Origin: Oikopleura dioica | Taxonomy: Eukaryota; Animalia; Chordata | Direction: 5' to 3' | DNA length: 64,000 bases | Assembly (NCBI GenBank): GCA_907165135.1 | Contig: OU015569.1 | Location: forward strand, 4,030,001 to 4,094,000 | Part shown: piece by piece, positions 23,883-56,033 of the stretch | How the letters are laid out: each line of letters begins with the position of its first letter | Numbering within the stretch: the first letter of the stretch is position 1 | The notes under the pieces: model-generated | The model's database searches: none | The model's input: the letters and a program-made list of their open reading frames with translations, nothing else | What the model was told of the DNA's origin: nothing | Made by a program: the position numbers and the translations under genes

Positions 23883-24897
23883 TGTCGATGTAGTTTAATA
23901 TTTTTGCGTCCGTCGATGTGGTCAGCTTGTCTCGAGACAGTTCTCTAAAAAAGTGAAGGATTAGATAGCTGGTTGCCGCAATTTATACGAGAAAAAAATA
24001 GTATGGGAGTAAAGGAGCATCACCGATAAGTAGCGCCGCAGGCGGGCTAACGACGTCATTCGCCAAAAGCCTGTAATTGACGCAACGATAGTTCAGTTCA
24101 CAAATTCCTTGTCCGTGAAAATAAAAACGGTCTCTTTCGTAAACCTAGTTTAGTAAATTATGAGAAGGTGCGGGAGTAAATTTCTAAATAGATCCAAATT
24201 AACGGAAGCGGAAATACTATATCTTCATTAATTCAGGACGCGATTTTCACGTGGTACTGTATTTCTTCCATAAAAGGGGGGACTCTGTTTTAACATGAGA
24301 ATCTCTTTTTTAGGTGACAATTAGTCGCTGACATGCGCTAGAGAAAAAATACCTTGACTTGACATTTTTGCCAACAACGCCCTGTCCTCTCAGACTTAAA
24401 CGCTTTAGCTACTGGGAGAATACTCTGTTGTTACTTGTTAATGATGATAGTAATTACTAATGACGGGTATTAAGTATTTAATTAATAATGAGTTTTGAAA
24501 ATATGAATTCGGATAAATTAAAAGAAGGAATTACGCGAAAATGAATTAGGAAATGGAAGATTTGTTGAATGTCTCTCCTGAATTCAATAAAATAGGGATG
24601 GAAAAATAGGCGTGTTCTGTTAACTCAGCGAAAATTAAAAATTGGTCTCGAGCGTGGGCAAAAACGTTCTGGCGCGCGCTGATGACTCAGAGAAATACGA
24701 AAAAGATCCTTTTCTGAAGAGCAGATCCTGCTTTCTTCTCTTTTCGGCATCTCTTTCCCCACTTTCCTGAGTCGGGTTTAGTCTTTATGAAAGTTGAAGC
24801 AATTATTGATTGAAATTTGTTTCATTATTCAAGCATGATGAAATGTTTCCGAAGAAAATAACGATTTTTTTCTTCTTCAGAAAAAGATTCATTTGAA

Positions 24898-27800
24898 ATG
24901 GCATTTTCGGGGACCGTGAGAATCGGCGACCTGGACGATTTTATCGGCCCCGGGCTCGAATGCACCAAACCGGTCGATATTCAAAAGCCGAAACGAGGCC
25001 AGGAAAAAGTTCAGTGATTTTAAAATCGCAGTTGTTAAAATGAAGCGAATCTGAACTTGGGCAAGGTCGGCCGTGTAAAAAGAAATAAAGGTACCTTCAA
25101 AAATCGCCAATTTTAATTGATAAAAACTGATAAGATTCGGCGAGGGATCTAGAATAATGACTAACTTGGGGTTTAGATGGCAGCTACGCCGACTCGTCGG
25201 GTAAGAAGCTCGAAAAGGCGAAAATAACACTGGCAGGTAAATCATGGCGTTTATAATGCGCTGGTAGGAGTGCCTTGGCTGGACTCACCTTTTATAATTG
25301 CCCTAGACTGTCTTGCTTGTTCTGGTTGCGTCACCTCTGCCGAGACAGTTTTGATCACCGCCCAGTCTGGGGTTCAGCGCCTCTTTCTCTTTTATACTTA
25401 GTCGCGTTTCGTGAAGTTAGCCTTGGAATATTTTAAATTCTCGCATGTTGGCGATCATGTCTGACCTGTAGCTTGAGCCCCGATTAGTCACTGGATGAGT
25501 TCTACTCTGTTTTGCGCAAGAAATCGTCGAAAGTTGTCGTCACGCTATCCCCTCAGTCGCGCAGTTCACTCGCTCAACGGTTTAGGCACACGGGGTGAAA
25601 AAAACCTTTATTCACCGTTAGGGGCGTTGCCCAACAACATTAACACGCAAAGCTCATCCCCCACGAAAGCGTGGATGAACTTACCATTTTGAGGAAAGGC
25701 TCTCATTTGAGAAGAGTGACCTAGTAAGGTGGCTGCTAACACTGTGACCGTCTTGACAGTCAAATCCGTTTGAAATTCATTCTGAGCCAGACAGAGGACT
25801 AAGAGCGGTTCTGCATAAACTGGGCGTGTGGAAGACGCGCGATTTGACTCCCTTCCGCGACGTGGCTCTAGAAGAGGTCAAGAATGAATTTCTCGCACGC
25901 CTCAACAGCCAAGCTCAAGCGGCCAAGGGTCCACTGCTTTGCTCCGCCTGTCCTGGTTTCGTCTGCTACGCCGAAAAGACGCAAGGAGATCTGCTCGTTC
26001 CGCAACTCTCAAAAGTACGCAGCCCACAGGAAAGGATGAAAACATTGCAAATAGCTGTCAATTGCACAAGTTTGCGATCGCAGTTGAGAATCCCTGGGAA
26101 AGCAAATTTCCGGCATGAGTCTGAAGCGATCGCTGCCAGACGAAGGAGCTTGTGAAAATCGCGAGTTAAGAATCTATCTGCGATTTTGATTAATTGAAAG
26201 GTGCTTCTTGGGAAGCTAGAACCTTTCTTTATCGCTTTCGAATGCGCGTGGAAGTATTTCGCATTTTCGCAGCCAAAGATAAAGACATTTACCACGTCAC
26301 TGTGATGCCATGTTTCGACAAAAGCTCGAAGCGGCCAGACAGGAATTCCAAATCGAGAGCAATGGCCGGGTTGTTAAGGATGTAGGAACGGGACTTCGCC
26401 ATTTATTTCTTTAGACTTGGCTCAGCAACCTGTGTAGAAAACCTGAGTATCTGAATGATGATTAATAAGAGGGAAATCACCTTGACAAGACTGCGTTCTG
26501 GCCACAACCGAGATCGAAAAATTGCTAGTCGACAATCTCGAAGAGGACGATCTGGAAACCGTCGTGGCTTCTTTCGAGCACGAGGACAACGACGGAGATG
26601 TTATTTACTCCCATCGTGGCGGAGGCTCTGGAGGATATCTCGACTACATCTATCGAAGCGCAGCGGAATCTCTCTTCGGAAAGGATCGCGAATCATTTTT
26701 TATTTCCAGTTGTCAAATCTACTAGTAGACGGATCAAACGACGCTTCCTGACAATGCTAGTGACAGGTTTAATTAATACCGCCATTTTGTTAATTTATGA
26801 GTGCTTTTCTGATCTTCGAAAAGGCCAAAAACCGACGGGAGAATTGACTTTCACCAAAGTCAGAAATAACAAAGATTTTCTTGAAACGACGCTAGAGATC
26901 GATGGCGAAGTTAAACTCAGGAAATGTTACGTTAAAATTCAAGAATATTTTTATTTTCGAAAATAGTTTATTTACACTTCAGAACATGGCTGTTGATTTC
27001 GAGTCCTTTGGTTTTACCCGGCATTTTTTCCGGGCAACCCGCAGATTTTTCTGCGGGTTACTCGCGCGGAGACCCGTGCGAGTAGATCGAGTAAATGGGT
27101 AAAGGATAATCGCGAGCTACTCGCGAAAATTTCGCCTAGAAAAAAGAAAATTCGCTCGTATGATTGGCTCGAGAAAAAGGGTTGCGGGTAATCACGAGCT
27201 ACTCGGCGGAAAGGAGAAAACAAGTAGAGCGGGTAGCCCGTGAAAAAGAGTCTCCGTGCGAGAAACCCGCTGAAAAATCTGCGGGTTGTCCGGAAAAAAT
27301 GCCGGGTAAAACCAAAGGACTCGAAATCAACAGCCATGCTTCAGAAATTGAAATAACAATGACACTGTTTTTTTTATGTTTCCGACAACTGGGGAGTCTA
27401 TGTTCTCCGACCAGAGAAGTCGCAGAGAGTCCCCCAGGGTACCAAAATGTAGCTAAGGGTCTGATCTGTGGCGTAGGGACACTGAGCAAATGTCAATGTC
27501 ACGTGATCTTTGACAAATGACGTCATCAACCCGAATATACCCGATTTCGCCAATTTTAACCTCATATTGGGAGTCTATGTTCTCGGAGTACAATCATCGT
27601 ACAGCGTCTCAAAGGGGCTCAAATGAGAGCTAAAGCTCTATTCTGTGGCGTAGGGGGGTTAAGATAATCTCAAGATATACTCATCCCTTTTTTACGGAGG
27701 GTCGAAAATGGCGTCGGAAACATAAAAAAAACAGTGTCAATGGAGAGATTCGCAAAGGCGTACGGTTTCCGAAGCATACAGAATCTAGTGACGCGACTGA

Positions 27801-29196
27801 AAACAAAGGGACTCGAGTTGAAGCGAACTTAAAAGCCTCTGAAAGAAAAGTGAGACAAGAAAGACACGCGCTCAACTCATTGATAAGCGAGGAAATGCCT
27901 ACGACTATATTGAAGTAATGGCCTGTCCGGAAAGGCTTTGATTTTGTCACTTTTTAAAATCTGCGATTTGGACGTTAAATTTTTAAATTTTAGTTTGAAA
28001 GTAGCGCCGCGAGGCTGATTTTCAACATTGTCAATGTTGGTTTTTTTATTGCTCACAAAAAGCGCGTCTGTCAAAGAGAAAGATGCGTGGTTGAGTTAAC
28101 ATTATAAATCGCCACGACGACAACGTTTTCTTCTCATCTTTTGGATATTTCAATGATTCTGACAGAGATGGATCAGAGAGAAGACCGGAATTGAAATTAT
28201 TGAACCCAAAGCCTAAAAACAGTCCGGCTGCTTGAATGGCGGAGCTCAAATTCGTTACGATGATCGAGAAACAAACGAGTCAATCTTGACCCGGATGACG
28301 GATGATTACAACGCCTTAGGTCCGGTGAATAGATAAAACAAAGCTCAATCATCCTCGGGATTAGAGCCTTAGTTGCGAGCACTAAATATTCATCGTTTTT
28401 TATTTTCGAAAAGTACGTATTTTAAGAAAGAGAAAACGCTTCTGAAGTCGCCACTTACTTTTTTCTCGCTGGGAATGACCTTGGAATTCCAATATGCAAA
28501 TACGTTAATTAGAGTACTGCAGATGCCTTTTTAATAGTAAATTTCAAAGTACGCAAATATTTGTCCGCAGCGTTCACCACGGGCGCGTCTTGCCAGCCGT
28601 AGCACCGCCTTGCGAATAGCTCAGAGATGGATGAAGAGATAAAAAACCACAAGTGCGTTATGAAGTTTTCATTACGCTCATTTCAACTTTTCCGATAGTT
28701 TGCGATCTAGTTTTTTTATAAATATGGTAAAGTCTTTTATTTAGTGTTCATTCCCGACAAACTGACTGGGCTCAACAACCTGAGCAGAAAACCTGAGAGA
28801 GGGTTCTGAAAGCCGCGTTTTGAAATGAAGCCGGAATTAAAAAATAGATTGAAATAATTATTAGATGGCATTTATTAAAACTCCTTTTGAACCCTGTGTC
28901 AAGTTTTCTACTCAGGTTGTCGAGCGCAACTTATTGATTTTTTTGGGACAAGAGGTATATTAGGTTCCAAAATATTTTCTTTTTCCGATTTAATCAAGAA
29001 TAGTTTCTCATTGATCTGTGAAAAAAATGAACTATCTCGTCACCGGCATGGCATAGAAAACTATCAGCCGCTGACGTGCGAAAAATTCAGCCCACTTTTC
29101 GCACAGTTAAAACGCGACATCGACAAACAGTCCCTCTACACAAGTTTCAGGGCTATTCAGAAAGAAGAGACGAACGCCTTGACGATCAAGTGGTGA
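24898..29196 (+). CDS. CIAO3: Cytosolic Fe-S assembly component 3 (NARFL/IOP1/Nar1, hydrogenase-like); many introns, at least 8 of them GA-AG
   Basis: [26 protein letters not shown]; [17 protein letters not shown]; [16 protein letters not shown]; [12 protein letters not shown](K)LEA; [11 protein letters not shown]; [14 protein letters not shown]; [17 protein letters not shown]; terminal [20 protein letters not shown]. One 1-nt shortfall in the A4 run at 26320-26323. Confidence 0.95.
26419..26447 (+). repeat. Solo terminal fragment of MITE family A in a CIAO3 intron
   Basis: GGCTCAGCAACCTGTGTAGAAAACCTGAG matches the family A ends. Confidence 0.65.
26985..27338. mobile_element. hAT-like non-autonomous element (354 bp)
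   Basis: About 89 bp TIRs starting CATGGCTGTTGATTTCGAGTCC (about 4 mismatches). Exact 8 bp flanking direct repeat CTTCAGAA at 26977-26984 and 27339-27346; an 8 bp TSD is typical of hAT. Confidence 0.9.
27361..27738. mobile_element. MITE (378 bp) with 26 bp perfect TIRs and an internal 177 bp periodicity
   Basis: GACACTGTTTTTTTTATGTTTCCGAC 27361-27386 / reverse complement 27713-27738, with AAT on both flanks. GGGAGTCTATGTTCTC at 27392 and 27569; TCTGTGGCGTAGGG at 27465 and 27642. Confidence 0.85.
28769..28925. mobile_element. Diverged MITE family A copy in a late CIAO3 intron
   Basis: About 37 bp imperfect TIR GCTCAACAACCTGAGCAGAAAACCTGAGAGAGGGTTC versus GCTCGACAACCTGAGTAGAAAACTTGACACAGGGTTC. 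Confidence 0.7.
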
Positions 29197-29366
29197 TTTT
29201 CTATTTTTAGAGGAGCGAGAGATTATTTTGGAATAAGATGCTGGATGTTCATTTTGATAGATACAGATTTGCCAACTGAGCTAATATTTAATTTCGGTCT
29301 ACTAATTCCCATCCGTTTCTTCGAGCTATCTCTCTATTTTTCATTGAATAAGTTCTATGTTCTTAA

Positions 29367-36377: not shown

Positions 36378-37567
36378 TTATGAACTTTCAGCTGATACTG
36401 ATACTATTAAAATTGAAGATCTTTCATAAACAAAGTACTCATCAAGATCGAGACAGTTTGAAAGAGTGACGACTTTTAATTTCTTGTTTTTGCATTCGTC
36501 TAAAAATTGATTCCAGGTGTCTTCATTTCGCATCGTTGCTTAGGATTTTATTGTTCATAAACAAGGCTATCCTCGAGTGGCTACCTGCTAGAATAATTTT
36601 TATTTCGGGCTTGTAATCTACGCATAGGCGAAGTAATGTTGTGAGGTCAGCAAACAACGCTGGCAAAAAGAATATATCTGCACCGCAAACGACATCGGTC
36701 TCGTCCAGCATTGCCTTCAACTCTTTCTGATCGTAAGAACACCAGTCGAGCTCCTTGACGGCTTTCCTTGATTCCAAAATGAGATTCGACCTTGGTCACT
36801 ATGAGAAATCTTTTGAATCAGTCCCTAGCGTCAATCCAGGCAGAAAACGCATCGCCGCCTTTGCATTCATCTCCGCAACCGAGAGCACTTCACTGTGAAC
36901 ATCCGTTAAGAAAACAGTCTTTTGAGAACTTTCTCCGAGTCGTAGAAGCGCGGCTGTAAATATTCCTCCTACTCCTGTTCCACAGCCAAGCTCAAGAAAA
37001 TTGCGTTCACCAAAGATTGCTCTCCCTGACTCCGAATTCGCGAACTCGGCGAGGCACCAGGCGGCGGGCCACGAGCAAAGACCCGTTGTGCCAGATTGGA
37101 GAAGCAAGCTTCGCGAACTAAAGAAAGGAAGCACTTTTCCTTCGGGAAGATGGTAATAGCGACAGCCGAACTGGCTTTCGGCCGGCAGCCTTGACTCGTT
37201 GAACGCGTCGTAGAGAACTGAAGAGACTTCCACGCCCTTTTCTTCCATCCATGTTATCAGCTTCTTTAGCAAGCGCGTGGTCCCGTGAATGTCCAAAGTT
37301 AGATCCTCCAGGAAGTACTTTTCTAACAGTTTTTCTTGGTTTCGACTGTCCTCCAAAAATCTTCGATCTTAGGGCTCTCTAGAATCGAGGAAAGACGTGT
37401 CACGGGCCAGCCTTCCTTTTATTGGGATAGTTTTTACAAAATTGCTCGTAATAACGCAGATTATACTCGAGAGAGAAACTTAGCTAATTTTAAGAATGAT
37501 GAATAAATTCCGTTTTGTTAGAGTTCTTATTTCCCGTTTCCTCGAAGCATCGGATAATCTCGCCCAT
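36378..37567 (-). CDS. EEF2KMT: Protein-lysine methyltransferase EEF2KMT/FAM86A-like, copy 1 (1-nt shortfall in the A run at 37355-37359)
   Basis: GTTGLCSWPAAWCLAEF; FLELGCGTG; FLTDVHSEVL; KELDW; DVVCGADIFF; TMRNEDTW. The start ATG is tentative. Confidence 0.8.
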
Positions 37568-38219
37568 GCCAGCAAAATTCTGACTTTCTCAGATTTCAAA
37601 TTTCGCGCCCTTCTGAGCTGCTCATCTGATTGCGCACCGTCCGCGCTCGCTGATTGGCTGCCCCACGCCCACATCTACACGTCACGCTACTCCTTTCATT
37701 TGCACTTGACTCATTAGTTGCAAATTCCTCGACACGAATTTCCCTTTTCGCACCTTTTGACATTGACCCACGGAGAATCTGTCCCTAAACAAAGAGAAAC
37801 CTCATTTTCTGTCTATTTTCTTCGTTGGAGGCCGCTCGAAAGATGGATTTCAAGAGAAACTGCCTTACGTGTCAACATTTAATTATTTTATTTCCGACCT
37901 ATCTTACATGAAAAAATTTCAGAATGTATCAACGCGACAGGAACCGCAGTTAAATGTCGAATACGATGTTTTTCTGCGATTTTTGCAATCGAAGGCGGGC
38001 TTTTGCCCAGGCTGCGTCAATGCGAATTCGAATGTGACTCGGATGAGCCGACGAAAACGATCCAAGAGTGGATGAAAATCCTTCGCCAACTACTGGCGAC
38101 AATGATGGTCTTGGTATGTGAACCCGCATGCTCACATCCACGACCATCAGTAATCGTAAAACCCGACTTATCACCAGATTTATGAGAATCTCTCACAAGT
38201 CAATCTCTCAGAATCTCTC

Positions 38220-39039
<820 letters not shown>

Positions 39040-39407
39040 TACGATTTTTTTTTCTGACTAAGAGCGAAAGGACTCTGTTTGAAGCTATTCAAATATTTAC
39101 TTGAACGCTTATATTGCCTATTGGCGCTCTGAAATTCACGATTGACTATTTTAGTCATTGTTGTTTTCATTAACACTAATTTAGCGGAAATGTGCAAACA
39201 GTCAACAACTACGGGCGAGACTACGACGATAGACCTAACTTCCATCAAGTCACTGACATCTCTACCGAAGCAGCCGTCCACGAAAATACGCAAGTGGTCT
39301 ATGCATAACGTTAGCACTAGAACCGTCCTTCGAAATTTATAAATATCTGTATTGTTATTTTTTATATTGTTACTACTTTTTCAAATTCAATAACTTTCCT
39401 TTCTGTT

Positions 39408-39734
39408 TTATCTCGCCATTCTTTGTGTACATTTAAAAAGTTCTTTCTTTCTCTTTCCAGCACTTTGTCTTTTTAATTCTAACATTTCAAGTTTAAATAA
39501 TGTAATATACAGTTGCCTTCTGATTACTTTTTGATTCGCTCCGAATACTGTTCCTTCAAAACAAATACTTCTACCAAATATTGCCAAAAAGTTCGTTACT
39601 ACTGCATGTATGAAAAATTCTGATTCCAGTCGAGTTCTTCGACCCTCCAGGAAAACTCGACGCATCTTTCTGTTAATATTTTGTTCACCCAATTGAAACT
39701 TCTTCAAGTGAAACTTCAACAAGACAGCAAACAT
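39408..39734 (-). CDS. Small unidentified ORF between EEF2KMT and the esterase (also at 36010-36312 and 42834-43160)
   Basis: About 108 aa open frame starting 66 nt after the EEF2KMT stop. Probably spliced; no family recognised. Confidence 0.25.
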   Translation of the reverse strand: MFAVLLKFHLKKFQLGEQNINRKMRRVFLEGRRTRLESEFFIHAVVTNFLAIFGRSICFEGTVFGANQKVIRRQLYITLFKLEMLELKRQSAGKRKKELFKCTQRMAR

Positions 39735-39799
39735 CAATAAACAACAGAAACATTATTTTTTCGTATTCCACTTTATTCAGCTAGAAGGCGATTCAGGCA

Positions 39800-40990
39800 T
39801 TATGAACTTTCAGCTGATACTGATACTATTAAAATTGAAGATCTTTCATAAACAAAGTACTCATCAAGATCGAGACAGTTTGAAAGAGTGACGACTTTTA
39901 ATTTCTTGTTTTTGCATTCGTCTAAAAATTGATTCCAGGTGTCTTCATTTCGCATCGTTGCTTAGGATTTTATTGTTCATAAACAAGGCTATCCTCGAGT
40001 GGCTACCTGCTAGAATAATTTTTATTTCGGGCTTGTAATCTACGCATAGGCGAAGTAATGTTGTGAGGTCAGCAAACAACGCTGGCAAAAAGAATATATC
40101 TGCACCGCAAACGACATCGGTCTCGTCCAGCATTGCCTTCAACTCTTTCTGATCGTAAGAACACCAGTCGAGCTCCTTGACGGCTTTCCTTGATTCCAAA
40201 ATGAGATTCGACCTTGGTCACTATGAGAAATCTTTTGAATCAGTCCCTAGCGTCAATCCAGGCAGAAAACGCATCGCCGCCTTTGCATTCATCTCCGCAA
40301 CCGAGAGCACTTCACTGTGAACATCCGTTAAGAAAACAGTCTTTTGAGAACTTTCTCCGAGTCGTAGAAGCGCGGCTGTAAATATTCCTCCTACTCCTGT
40401 TCCACAGCCAAGCTCAAGAAAATTGCGTTCACCAAAGATTGCTCTCCCTGACTCCGAATTCGCGAACTCGGCGAGGCACCAGGCGGCGGGCCACGAGCAA
40501 AGACCCGTTGTGCCAGATTGGAGAAGCAAGCTTCGCGAACTAAAGAAAGGAAGCACTTTTCCTTCGGGAAGATGGTAATAGCGACAGCCGAACTGGCTTT
40601 CGGCCGGCAGCCTTGACTCGTTGAACGCGTCGTAGAGAACTGAAGAGACTTCCACGCCCTTTTCTTCCATCCATGTTATCAGCTTCTTTAGCAAGCGCGT
40701 GGTCCCGTGAATGTCCAAAGTTAGATCCTCCAGGAAGTACTTTTCTAACAGTTTTTCTTGGTTTCGACTGTCCTCCAAAAAATCTTCGATCTTAGGGCTC
40801 TCTAGAATCGAGGAAAGACGTGTCACGGGCCAGCCTTCCTTTTATTGGGATAGTTTTTACAAAATTGCTCGTAATAACGCAGATTATACTCGAGAGAGAA
40901 ACTTAGCTAATTTTAAGAATGATGAATAAATTCCGTTTTGTTAGAGTTCTTATTTCCCGTTTCCTCGAAGCATCGGATAATCTCGCCCAT
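39800..40990 (-). CDS. EEF2KMT: EEF2KMT/FAM86A-like, copy 2 (intact frame)
   Basis: Same motifs as copy 1; the 201 aa exon is uninterrupted. Confidence 0.82.
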
Positions 40991-41643
40991 GCCAGCAAAA
41001 TTCTGACTTTCTCAGATTTCAAATTTCGCGCCCTTCTGAGCTGCTCATCTGATTGCGCACCGTCCGCGCTCGCTGATTGGCTGCCCCACGCCCACATCTA
41101 CACGTCACGCTACTCCTTTCATTTGCACTTGACTCATTAGTTGCAAATTCCTCGACACGAATTTCCCTTTTCGCACCTTTTGACATTGACCCACGGAGAA
41201 TCTGTCCCTAAACAAAGAGAAACCTCATTTTCTGTCTATTTTCTTCGTTGGAGGCCGCTCGAAAGATGGATTTCAAGAGAAACTGCCTTACGTGTCAACA
41301 TTTAATTATTTTATTTCCGACCTATCTTACATGAAAAAAATTTCAGAATGTATCAACGCGACAGGAACCGCAGTTAAATGTCGAATACGATGTTTTTCTG
41401 CGATTTTTGCAATCGAAGGCGGGCTTTTGCCCAGGCTGCGTCAATGCGAATTCGAATGTGACTCGGATGAGCCGACGAAAACGATCCAAGAGTGGATGAA
41501 AATCCTTCGCCAACTACTGGCGACAATGATGGTCTTGGTATGTGAACCCGCATGCTCACATCCACGACCATCAGTAATCGTAAAACCCGACTTATCACCA
41601 GATTTATGAGAATCTCTCACAAGTCAATCTCTCAGAATCTCTC

Positions 41644-42465
<822 letters not shown>

Positions 42466-43225
42466 TACGATTTTTTTTTCTGACTAAGAGCGAAAGGACT
42501 CTGTTTGAAGCTATTCAAATATTTACTTGAACGCTTATATTGCCTATTGGCGCTCTGAAATTCACGATTGACTATTTTAGTCATTGTTGTTTTCATTAAC
42601 ACTAATTTAGCGGAAATGTGCAAACAGTCAACAACTACGGGCGAGACTACGACGATAGACCTAACTTCCATCAAGTCACTGACATCTCTACCGAAGCAGC
42701 CGTCCACGAAAATACGCAAGTGGTCTATGCATAACGTTAGCACTAGAACCGTCCTTCGAAATTTATAAATATCTGTATTGTTATTTTTTATATTGTTACT
42801 ACTTTTTCAAATTCAATAACTTTCCTTTCTGTTTTATCTCGCCATTCTTTGTGTACATTTAAAAAGTTCTTTCTTTCTCTTTCCAGCACTTTGTCTTTTT
42901 AATTCTAACATTTCAAGTTTAAATAATGTAATATACAGTTGCCTTCTGATTACTTTTTGATTCGCTCCGAATACTGTTCCTTCAAAACAAATACTTCTAC
43001 CAAATATTGCCAAAAAGTTCGTTACTACTGCATGTATGAAAAATTCTGATTCCAGTCGAGTTCTTCGACCCTCCAGGAAAACTCGACGCATCTTTCTGTT
43101 AATATTTTGTTCACCCAATTGAAACTTCTTCAAGTGAAACTTCAACAAGACAGCAAACATCAATAAACAACAGAAACATTATTTTTTCGTATTCCACTTT
43201 ATTCAGCTAGAAGGCGATTCAGGCA

Positions 43226-44416
43226 TTATGAACTTTCAGCTGATACTGATACTATTAAAATTGAAGATCTTTCATAAACAAAGTACTCATCAAGATCGAG
43301 ACAGTTTGAAAGAGTGACGACTTTTAATTTCTTGTTTTTGCATTCGTCTAAAAATTGATTCCAGGTGTCTTCATTTCGCATCGTTGCTTAGGATTTTATT
43401 GTTCATAAACAAGGCTATCCTCGAGTGGCTACCTGCTAGAATAATTTTTATTTCGGGCTTGTAATCTACGCATAGGCGAAGTAATGTTGTGAGGTCAGCA
43501 AACAACGCTGGCAAAAAGAATATATCTGCACCGCAAACGACATCGGTCTCGTCCAGCATTGCCTTCAACTCTTTCTGATCGTAAGAACACCAGTCGAGCT
43601 CCTTGACGGCTTTCCTTGATTCCAAAATGAGATTCGACCTTGGTCACTATGAGAAATCTTTTGAATCAGTCCCTAGCGTCAATCCAGGCAGAAAACGCAT
43701 CGCCGCCTTTGCATTCATCTCCGCAACCGAGAGCACTTCACTGTGAACATCCGTTAAGAAAACAGTCTTTTGAGAACTTTCTCCGAGTCGTAGAAGCGCG
43801 GCTGTAAATATTCCTCCTACTCCTGTTCCACAGCCAAGCTCAAGAAAATTGCGTTCACCAAAGATTGCTCTCCCTGACTCCGAATTCGCGAACTCGGCGA
43901 GGCACCAGGCGGCGGGCCACGAGCAAAGACCCGTTGTGCCAGATTGGAGAAGCAAGCTTCGCGAACTAAAGAAAGGAAGCACTTTTCCTTCGGGAAGATG
44001 GTAATAGCGACAGCCGAACTGGCTTTCGGCCGGCAGCCTTGACTCGTTGAACGCGTCGTAGAGAACTGAAGAGACTTCCACGCCCTTTTCTTCCATCCAT
44101 GTTATCAGCTTCTTTAGCAAGCGCGTGGTCCCGTGAATGTCCAAAGTTAGATCCTCCAGGAAGTACTTTTCTAACAGTTTTTCTTGGTTTCGACTGTCCT
44201 CCAAAAAATCTTCGATCTTAGGGCTCTCTAGAATCGAGGAAAGACGTGTCACGGGCCAGCCTTCCTTTTATTGGGATAGTTTTTACAAAATTGCTCGTAA
44301 TAACGCAGATTATACTCGAGAGAGAAACTTAGCTAATTTTAAGAATGATGAATAAATTCCGTTTTGTTAGAGTTCTTATTTCCCGTTTCCTCGAAGCATC
44401 GGATAATCTCGCCCAT
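43226..44416 (-). CDS. EEF2KMT: EEF2KMT/FAM86A-like, copy 3 (intact frame)
   Basis: Same motifs as copy 2. Confidence 0.82.
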
Positions 44417-55998: not shown

Positions 55999-56033
55999 CC
56001 TGCCTCAGGTTTCCTACAAAGGTTGTCGAGCCC
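55999..56033 (-). repeat. Solo terminal fragment of MITE family A
   Basis: Reverse complement GGGCTCGACAACCTTTGTAGGAAACCTGAGGCAGG matches the family A ends. Confidence 0.6.

Follow-up and report, generated by a model that had tools for sequence, protein, structure and literature searches.

The gene for the cytosolic Fe-S cluster assembly factor CIAO3 (NARFL, Nar1) of the tunicate Oikopleura dioica holds an unusual concentration of introns that lack GT-AG ends. The gene was analyzed in a stretch of 64,000 nt (positions 4,030,001 to 4,094,000 of contig OU015569.1, assembly GCA_907165135.1), here called the window, where it occupies positions 24898-29196 of the plus strand. Eleven of its 14 introns, all within 4.3 kb, are not GT-AG. 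Eight are GA-AG (I1, I6, I7, I8, I9, I10, I11, and I13), one is GG-AG (I12), one is GC-AG (I5), and I4 is neither GT-AG nor of the type G plus non-T; the GT-AG introns are I2, I3, and I14. O. dioica is known for introns that start with GA, GC, or GG and end with AG (GV/AG introns), and the CIAO3 introns resemble them in the G plus non-T start, the AG end, the species, and the canonical U1 (PMC7072748, PMC8008620, PMC13326754). The eleven introns belong to or border on this class, are removed from mRNA, and have GA donors that are stable across cryptic lineages and, in some cases, across species. CIAO3 is a real concentration of an intron class that is itself known. The pile-up probably reflects the gene's own history of lineage-specific non-canonical introns, which an ordinary spliceosome with a canonical U1 would remove without special machinery.

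The locus is the single, intact, and expressed CIAO3 gene of O. dioica, Okinawa lineage. A profile search of the whole genome (assembly OKI2018_I69, 64,281,565 bases in 19 contigs, with the window on contig C2, XSR) gave a single PF02906 match, and this is the sole Fe-hydrogenase-like gene. Its closest named relatives are annotated as "cytosolic Fe-S cluster assembly factor narfl / CIAO3." The Fe_hyd_lg_C domain (PF02906) and the cysteine motifs CLACSGC, CPGF, MPCFDKK, and ACPSGCLNGG are present and align with those of amphioxus, Styela, and lamprey. The gene model was built by reading the three frames and aligning public RNA to positions 24300-29300. It has 15 exons and a coding sequence of 1,377 nt (458 amino acids) without internal stop, if one missing A is allowed for. 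The spliced model was assembled from the exon positions in the window, an N standing for the missing base, and served for frame checks and for alignment to the relatives' loci; database searches used single exons or already retrieved proteins as queries.

The missing base lies in exon 9, where the assembly has AAAA at 26316-26319. Same-lineage RNA has AAAAA, with the extra A after 26319, so that the frameshift is an assembly error or a polymorphism, and all relatives read DKKLEA across the site. The public model Oidioi.mRNA.OKI2018_I69.XSR.g14407.t1 (protein P0192, 399 amino acids) matches the window exons in sequence. It retains I7, which offsets the missing A at the cost of approximately 50 wrong residues, and then runs into I12 and stops, without exons 13 to 15. 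The model is wrong because of the non-canonical introns and the 1-nt assembly error. The missing base and the garbled public model could be taken as signs of a decaying pseudogene or a misassembly in which the GA donors are errors. This can hardly be the case: RNA of the same lineage has the A that the assembly lacks and shows GA-AG splicing, the reading frame of the genome's sole copy is intact apart from this base, and GA donors are found again in other lineages, in metagenome contigs obtained independently.

Four RNA runs (X1, X5, X6, and X7) were used to determine the junctions. Contigs from X1, a plankton metatranscriptome, are 100% identical to the window. Runs X5 to X7 carry the same species label and are only 85-95% alike to the window, and thus come from another cryptic lineage, the sister lineage. 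An X1 contig joins 26027 to 26101 and 26142 to 26282, which, with the allowed shifts, corresponds to the GA-AG introns I7 and I8. Reads of X5 to X7 contain GT-AG joints at I3 and I14 and joints of 79, 293, and 122 nt at I12, I13, and I4, respectively, and at I1, I5, and I11 loose ends of sister-lineage reads match the sequence of the upstream exon. At the protein level, I7 to I14 are confirmed by L019 (protein P0003), a spliced metatranscriptome contig that belongs to another lineage; the L019 mRNA also confirms I5 and I6. Since exon 6 is joined there as ...ILR^GLRAV (^, splice junction), I6 is the GA-AG intron 25694-25794. The junctions of I2 and I9 are supported by P0192, and that of I9 also by P0003. 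In summary, absence from mature mRNA was seen for I7 and I8 in the same-lineage contig and for the others, except I2, in sister-lineage reads or mRNA contigs. The exon 10 peptide alone had no matches in a large protein index, and scanning metagenome contigs with P0003 returned only Oikopleura mRNA contigs and distant protists.

Each junction permits one to three slid readings, and only GV/AG is common to all. Ten introns have this start and end (eight GA, one GG, and one GC), and I4 does not. The flanks of the GA introns show AG at -2/-1 in six of eight, G at -1 in all eight, and A at +3 in seven of eight, as described for O. dioica GA introns, in which the exon ends with AG or G and A is found at +3 (PMC7072748). 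The I4 junction lies inside a 4-nt repeat, AGTC, which is present at both intron ends, was seen in two lineages, and allows sliding; elsewhere the junction repeats are 2-3 nt and correspond to the AG consensus.

GT alternatives were enumerated for every intron. For I4, an in-frame GT-AG alternative (25372-25487) starts 6 nt downstream, adds the residues SG, and is used by the public model. These residues are absent in two other lineages and in the related species, which read AQ^SL at this position, and donor 25372 is a possible option in the window lineage. The sequence-only reading had raised alternative GT donors as a concern; those at I1 and I10 were excluded. The I1 donor at 25009 was rejected based on sister mRNA and on a related species (R, described below), and the in-frame I10 donor at 26709 based on the junction in P0003 and P0192. 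Reading I6 as AA-AG or as GA-CA (25695-25759) with an 11-residue insert was also rejected, since L019, P0192, and two other lineages show the acceptor at 25794. A GT is located exactly 6 nt downstream of the used 5' cut in I1, I4, and I8 (25009, 25372, and 26152).

These data bear on the earlier, sequence-only list of eight GA-AG introns. Six of them (I1, I7, I9, I10, I11, and I13) were placed exactly, and two were misplaced. The intron read as 26146-26272 is indeed GA-AG, but X1 skips 139 nt, so that I8 is 12 nt longer. The intron read as GA-AG at 27810-27891 is in fact the GG-AG intron I12: sister reads skip 79 nt, and the proteins deduced from mRNA read LKTK^RGNAY. Furthermore, I4, I5, and I6 had been missed; since I6 is GA-AG, the total of eight is unchanged. 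The claim of a G at exon position -1 held for all eight GA-AG introns. The 3' ends had been described as mostly purine-rich; this fits the last 5-6 bases before AG, but the pyrimidine content from -18 to -4 is only weakly different between non-GT and GT introns (0.50 versus 0.58, p = 0.07).

The published rate of non-canonical introns is 12% in the OdB3 genome and 11% in OKI2018_I69 (PMC8008620), and GA-AG introns are more frequent in O. dioica than GC-AG introns (PMC7072748). CIAO3 differs from this genome-wide 11-12% by having 11 of 14 in one gene. At a rate of 0.12, a binomial model that assumes independent introns gives P = 1.9e-8 for at least 11 of 14. The excess is thus real under independence and statistically striking, in line with the clustering beyond chance that had been suspected. 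As a control, we used the neighboring amino-acid transporter gene on the minus strand (20.8-23.9 kb), the introns of which were read by mapping its part of the L019 mRNA onto the window. Eight of them are GT-AG and one is GA-AG, and two were left without assigned ends. In the accessible published work, we found no gene with 11 of 14 such introns, no terminal stems, and no presence/absence comparison among relatives. The non-canonical GV/AG introns of O. dioica were reportedly described by Denoeud et al. in 2010.

The history of the introns was traced in relatives. The amphioxus and lamprey genes (10 and 9 introns, respectively) share eight exact positions, and none of the 14 CIAO3 introns coincides with them; the nearest are 2 and 4 nt away, as expected by chance. 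The narfl-like gene of Styela clava (L108) is one uninterrupted open reading frame of 1,464 nt and, being intronless, is useless as an outgroup. More informative was relative R, a 16-kb Tara scaffold (L103) with the same flanking transporter genes and an intact 458-amino-acid gene (68% protein identity). R has six introns: I2 and I3 (GT-AG), I5 (odd ends), I6 (GA-AG), I12 (GC-AG), and I13 (GA-AG). Four non-canonical introns (I5, I6, I12, and I13) are therefore common to both species. I1, I4, I7 to I11, and I14 are absent from R, in which exons 1-2, 4-5, 7-12, and 14-15 are contiguous, uninterrupted coding sequence. A third species, S (L106/L107), shares the I5 site and lacks I6 and I8. It has GT-AG introns close to the I7 and I9 sites, 8 nt downstream of the former and 7 nt upstream of the latter. 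The GA donors of I6, I7, and I8 are kept in three O. dioica lineages, two of which were sampled through short metagenome contigs. No shared intron shows a switch from GT to GA, and the canonical I2 and I3 are among the oldest.

From these comparisons, all 14 introns are lineage specific, with no ancestral chordate intron kept, and eight are either specific to the O. dioica complex or were lost in R. Of the burst of intron gain proposed earlier, the gain itself is supported by the lack of ancestral positions and the eight introns absent from R. The cluster is not a recent burst, however, because GA donors are conserved in three lineages and four non-canonical introns are shared with R. A different history is that the ancestor had most of the 14 introns and that R lost I7 to I11 in one cDNA recombination and I1, I4, and I14 separately, so that an old cluster was merely retained in O. 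dioica. The five introns missing from R are adjacent, four non-canonical introns are shared, and the GA donors are long established in the O. dioica complex, all as this history predicts. On the other hand, I8 is absent from both R and S, the GT-AG introns of S lie near but not at the I7 and I9 sites, and I12 and I13, located between the lost blocks, are kept in R. We regard this history as rather unlikely. In species S, an mRNA contig (L107:734-760) has one G too many where the exons meet (K^DVD), and its open reading frame is thereby split in two; either an acceptor 1 nt upstream is used or the assembly is in error.

Many of the introns have complementary ends. For each intron, the best uninterrupted helix that the first 22 bases can form with the last 26 was compared to shuffled sequences. 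Stems with p < 0.05 were found in I1, I4, I5, I8, I12, and I13, and also in I14, which has the weak donor GTCCGG, but not in I2 and I3. Of the eight GT introns in the control gene, one reached p < 0.05; the single GA intron of that gene has the stem AGGGTC/GACCCT at +4/-10. Over 16 introns without a GT donor and 13 with one, stem p values differed (Mann-Whitney p = 0.0065), with p < 0.05 in 9/16 and 3/13, respectively. The outer pair of the stems is located at +3 to +7 and -6 to -13. In I1 and I4, the 5' arm contains the same GTTCAG at +7 to +12. Stems of I6, I12, and I13 are present in both O. dioica and R, with unrelated sequences. Furthermore, the I6 stem is invariant across three lineages in which the intron interiors do not align, and in the I4 stem a G-C pair of one lineage is replaced by A-T in another, a compensatory double change. 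Conservation across species and lineages is a stronger argument than the p-value statistics. Minimum-energy folds brought the two ends of GT introns together as well, and fold topology was therefore not used as evidence. In the Oikopleura literature checked, which did not include Denoeud et al. 2010 and Henriet et al. 2019, we found no description of such stems.

We propose that self-complementary ends combined with a weak or non-GT donor may mark many of the introns that arise, or survive, in this lineage, and that CIAO3 would have gained unusually many of them or would not have lost them. Their removal would be achieved by an ordinary, permissive U2-type spliceosome with a canonical U1. It would probably be aided by good U1 and U6 pairing outside position +2 (AG^GAAAG), and probably also by a short stem that begins 3-7 nt into the intron, ends 6-13 nt short of its 3' end, and draws the cut sites together. 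No gene-specific factor would be needed, and no regulatory gate would be implied.

As the alternative to a burst of intron gain, the sequence-only reading had suggested dependence on a variant U1 or U6 or an accessory factor, which could make CIAO3 a gate of Fe-S maturation. In favor of this, a single essential gene present in one copy does hold a real excess, and unspliced reads around I4 and I13 occur in the sister lineage. However, the four full-length U1 genes in the genome all start with ATACTTACCTG, the canonical 5' end, so that a variant U1 is not supported. The U1 5' end is also conserved in Fritillaria borealis, and larvacean U1, including that of O. dioica, carries a stable 5'-terminal m6A (PMC13326754). 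Moreover, the same intron class is present in the neighboring gene, and antisense transcription explains why reads around I4 are unspliced. Junction reads in X5/X6/X7 were 15/18/8 for I12 and 11/18/8 for I13, compared to 16/21/4 for the canonical I3 and 26/43/9 for I14. The non-canonical junctions are thus similar to I3 and below I14, within approximately 2.5-fold, which argues against gating, and there is no sign that retention is regulated. Dedicated machinery and a regulated gate are very improbable.

Shared motifs raise the question of whether one GA-AG intron was copied into other sites of the same gene or transcript by reverse splicing or local duplication. Four GA introns start with GAAAGG, I6 and I13 match at 14 of 16 bases at the 5' end, and the 7-mer ATCGCAG occurs in I1, I7, I8, and I13, compared to 0.23 expected. 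In addition, I7 and I8 share 17 nt (z = 4.6), I1 and I7 share 10/10, and the GTTCAG of I1 and I4 occupies the same position. Such propagation is nevertheless improbable, since no intron pair aligns past short motifs, GAAAG after the cut is near the general flank of GA introns (PMC7072748), and the motif enrichment is borderline after multiple-testing correction.

The intron bodies are single copy in the genome; the only repeats are nested miniature inverted-repeat transposable elements (MITEs) in I9, I11, and I14. No MITE forms an intron boundary, and no multicopy family matches the intron bodies. A family of approximately 1,700 copies is represented by a 45-nt fragment in I9 (26416-26460) and a full copy in I14 (approximately 28766-28927). 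A further copy is found at 56004-56032, and the inverted-repeat core of the family, approximately 29 nt (GGCTCGGCAACC...AAACCTGAG), occurs on both strands genome-wide. Separately, a palindrome-prone motif, AAAATC(T)GCGA or ATCGCAG, is present in I1, I7, I8, and I13 (25023, 26083, 26156, 26178, and 27958). Five of the eight window-wide matches to the AAATC(T)GCGA-type pattern are in I1, I8, and I13, and I7 has only the 7-mer ATCGCAG. The motif resembles part of the inverted repeat of the I11 MITE; it may act as an enhancer or may be left over from a shared origin of the introns.

Several points weigh against our preferred account, in which an ordinary spliceosome removes introns accumulated through the gene's own history. 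The binomial probability rests on independence of the introns and not on the genome-wide distribution per gene. Newness is insufficient as an explanation by itself, since the introns of the neighboring gene are mostly GT-AG. Gain and loss can be read either way, and the five adjacent introns missing from R (I7 to I11) fit a single cDNA-mediated loss. Most junction support comes from sister lineages, and I4, I9, and I10 are without RNA from the window lineage. As for the stems, a Fisher test on the counts is weak (p = 0.08, one-sided), and no contiguous stem reaches significance in I7, I9, I10, or I11. Conversely, stems are present in two introns with GT donors, I14 and the R copy of I2. Whole-intron fold energies are ordinary except for I8.

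A more far-reaching possibility is structure-assisted splicing, in which a stem in fixed register would help to define, or outright define, the cut sites of introns with weak or non-GT donors. In that case I4 would have originated when a palindromic element inserted, and it would be a chordate counterpart of the euglenid nonconventional introns. I4 is a candidate because it has no GV/AG reading, a 4-nt direct repeat, and a 10-bp stem with a compensatory change. We put this forward tentatively and consider it doubtful. The euglenid introns have a stem at approximately +4 to +6 with -8 to -6, similar to the CIAO3 register. They also have a weak polypyrimidine tract and short direct repeats at the junctions, the latter seen in CIAO3 in I4 only. 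In contrast to CIAO3, where 10 of the 11 introns keep G at +1 and the AG end, they have no fixed end dinucleotides and are thought to be excised as circles, independently of the normal spliceosome (PMC11282704).

Other systems were compared as well. The non-canonical introns of Fritillaria borealis (Henriet et al. 2019, as summarized in PMC11282704 and PMC13326754) are reported to be derived from MITEs and to occupy species-specific positions, and the canonical introns to occupy conserved ones. Both animals are larvacean tunicates with inverted repeats at intron ends. The Fritillaria introns as described there are mostly AG/AC and AG/AT, and the U2AF subunits are duplicated, whereas the CIAO3 introns keep the 3' AG and have single-copy bodies. 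Introners (Gozashti et al. 2022, as summarized in PMC11282704) are lineage specific and have inverted-repeat ends. CIAO3 resembles them in part, with inverted ends in most introns, uninterrupted sites in R for I1, I4, I7 to I11, and I14, and MITEs active in the same introns. It differs from the introners of that summary in that the intron bodies match no multicopy family and the MITEs are nested and do not form boundaries. In human FGFR genes (Brackenridge et al. 2003, as cited in PMC7072748), an efficient GA 5' splice site has a helper GT upstream, whereas the GT of CIAO3 is downstream in three introns and absent from most GA introns.

GA-AG introns are rare in most eukaryotes, and O. dioica tolerates thousands of them. 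CIAO3 offers natural controls: canonical introns in the same transcript, relatives without eight of the introns, and relatives that keep the stem but not its sequence. It is thus a compact substrate for minigene work on donor strength, stem pairing, and U1 modification and, if splicing is structure assisted, would be the densest natural test bed for it. Because the g14407 model is wrong at this locus, other genes rich in non-canonical introns are probably underannotated, and the published rates may be underestimates. The exons and introns are listed in Table 1.

Table 1. Exons, introns, and nested elements of CIAO3 (positions in the window; ^, splice junction)
Feature	Position	Strand	Evidence and remarks	Terminal stem
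Exon 1	24898..25002	+	Start codon, MAFSGTV...KRGQ; identical to P0192	
I1, GA-AG, 63 nt	25003..25065	+	Sister loose end ...GGCCAG^GTTGGCC; absent in R (GQVGRV contiguous)	8 bp, AAGTTCAG/CTGAACTT at +5/-8, p = 0.006
Exon 2	25066..25090	+	RNA and frame	
I2, GT-AG, 86 nt	25091..25176	+	Shared with R	
Exon 3	25177..25236	+		
I3, GT-AG, 70 nt	25237..25306	+	Joint in X5-X7; shared with R	
Exon 4	25307..25365	+	CLACSGC cluster	
I4, TC-AG (or GT-TA, AG-TT, others), 122 nt	25366..25487	+	20 sister-lineage reads; absent in R	10 bp at +3/-6, p = 0.006
Exon 5	25488..25585	+		
I5, GC-AG, 84 nt	25586..25669	+	Loose end at 25585; L019 mRNA; position common to R and S	GGGGTGA/TCATCCC
Exon 6	25670..25693	+	VDELTIL	
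I6, GA-AG, 101 nt	25694..25794	+	L019 mRNA and P0192 (...ILR^GLRAV); shared with R	GGCTC/GAGCC; stem of different sequence in R
Exon 7	25795..26029	+	PF02906 core	
I7, GA-AG, 73 nt	26030..26102	+	100% identical X1 contig skips 73 nt; absent in R	
Exon 8	26103..26145	+		
I8, GA-AG, 139 nt	26146..26284	+	139 nt spliced out of the X1 contig; lacking in R and S	Longest stem, ~12 bp; whole-intron fold z = -2.2
Exon 9	26285..26385	+	Assembly short one A in 26316-26319	
I9, GA-AG, 104 nt	26386..26489	+	VKDV^DCVL in P0192 and P0003; absent in R	No contiguous stem
Exon 10	26490..26678	+		
I10, GA-AG, 145 nt	26679..26823	+	SLFG^(Q/R)KP in P0003 and P0192; absent in R	Weak, AGGATCG/TGATCTT
Exon 11	26824..26920	+		
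I11, GA-AG, 827 nt (~84 nt minus two nested MITEs)	26921..27747	+	Loose end at 27746; absent in R	
MITE in I11	26985..27338	.	89-nt terminal inverted repeats; 8-bp target duplication CTTCAGAA	
Second MITE in I11	27357..27742	.	30-nt inverted repeats, CAATG flanks; ends 5 nt before 3' splice site	
Exon 12	27748..27808	+		
I12, GG-AG, 79 nt	27809..27887	+	79-nt joint in X5-X7; LKTK^RGNAY; shared with R (there GC-AG)	GAGTTGA/TCAACTC; R stem different, 9 bp
Exon 13	27888..27929	+		
I13, GA-AG, 293 nt	27930..28222	+	Joint in X5-X7; shared with R, also GA-AG there	AGGCTTTG/CAAAGCCT at +4/-9; R stem unrelated, ~10 Watson-Crick pairs (13 with wobble)
Exon 14	28223..28319	+	SGCLNGG...	
I14, GT-AG, weak donor GTCCGG, 737 nt	28320..29056	+	Joint in X5-X7; absent in R	CCGGTGA/TCACCGG
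Exon 15	29057..29196	+	Ends ...NALTIKW and stop	

In addition, antisense RNA was observed at 25310-25533 (minus strand). One X1 record joins 25533-25466 to 25421-25310, and the skipped 44 nt have GT..AG ends on the minus strand. L019 links the 5' end of the divergent transporter gene (approximately 23946) to approximately 25303. The 5' exons of the neighbor therefore seem to overlap CIAO3 exons 4 and 5 in antisense, and this transcript accounts for the lack of splicing in reads around I4. Part of I13 (within 27974-28221) is covered by some reads of the sister lineage, which join 28133 to 28221, and 13 X6 reads enter exon 14 unspliced; this may reflect partial retention or an alternative exon. 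An Rfam scan of the CIAO3 locus gave no credible match and no intronic snoRNA.

According to the public gene name, the locus is part of the sex chromosome and lies in its X-specific region (XSR). Elsewhere in the window, at 36799-44252 on the minus strand, a gene with a Methyltransf_16 (lysine methyltransferase) domain is present in three tandem copies approximately 3.4 kb apart.

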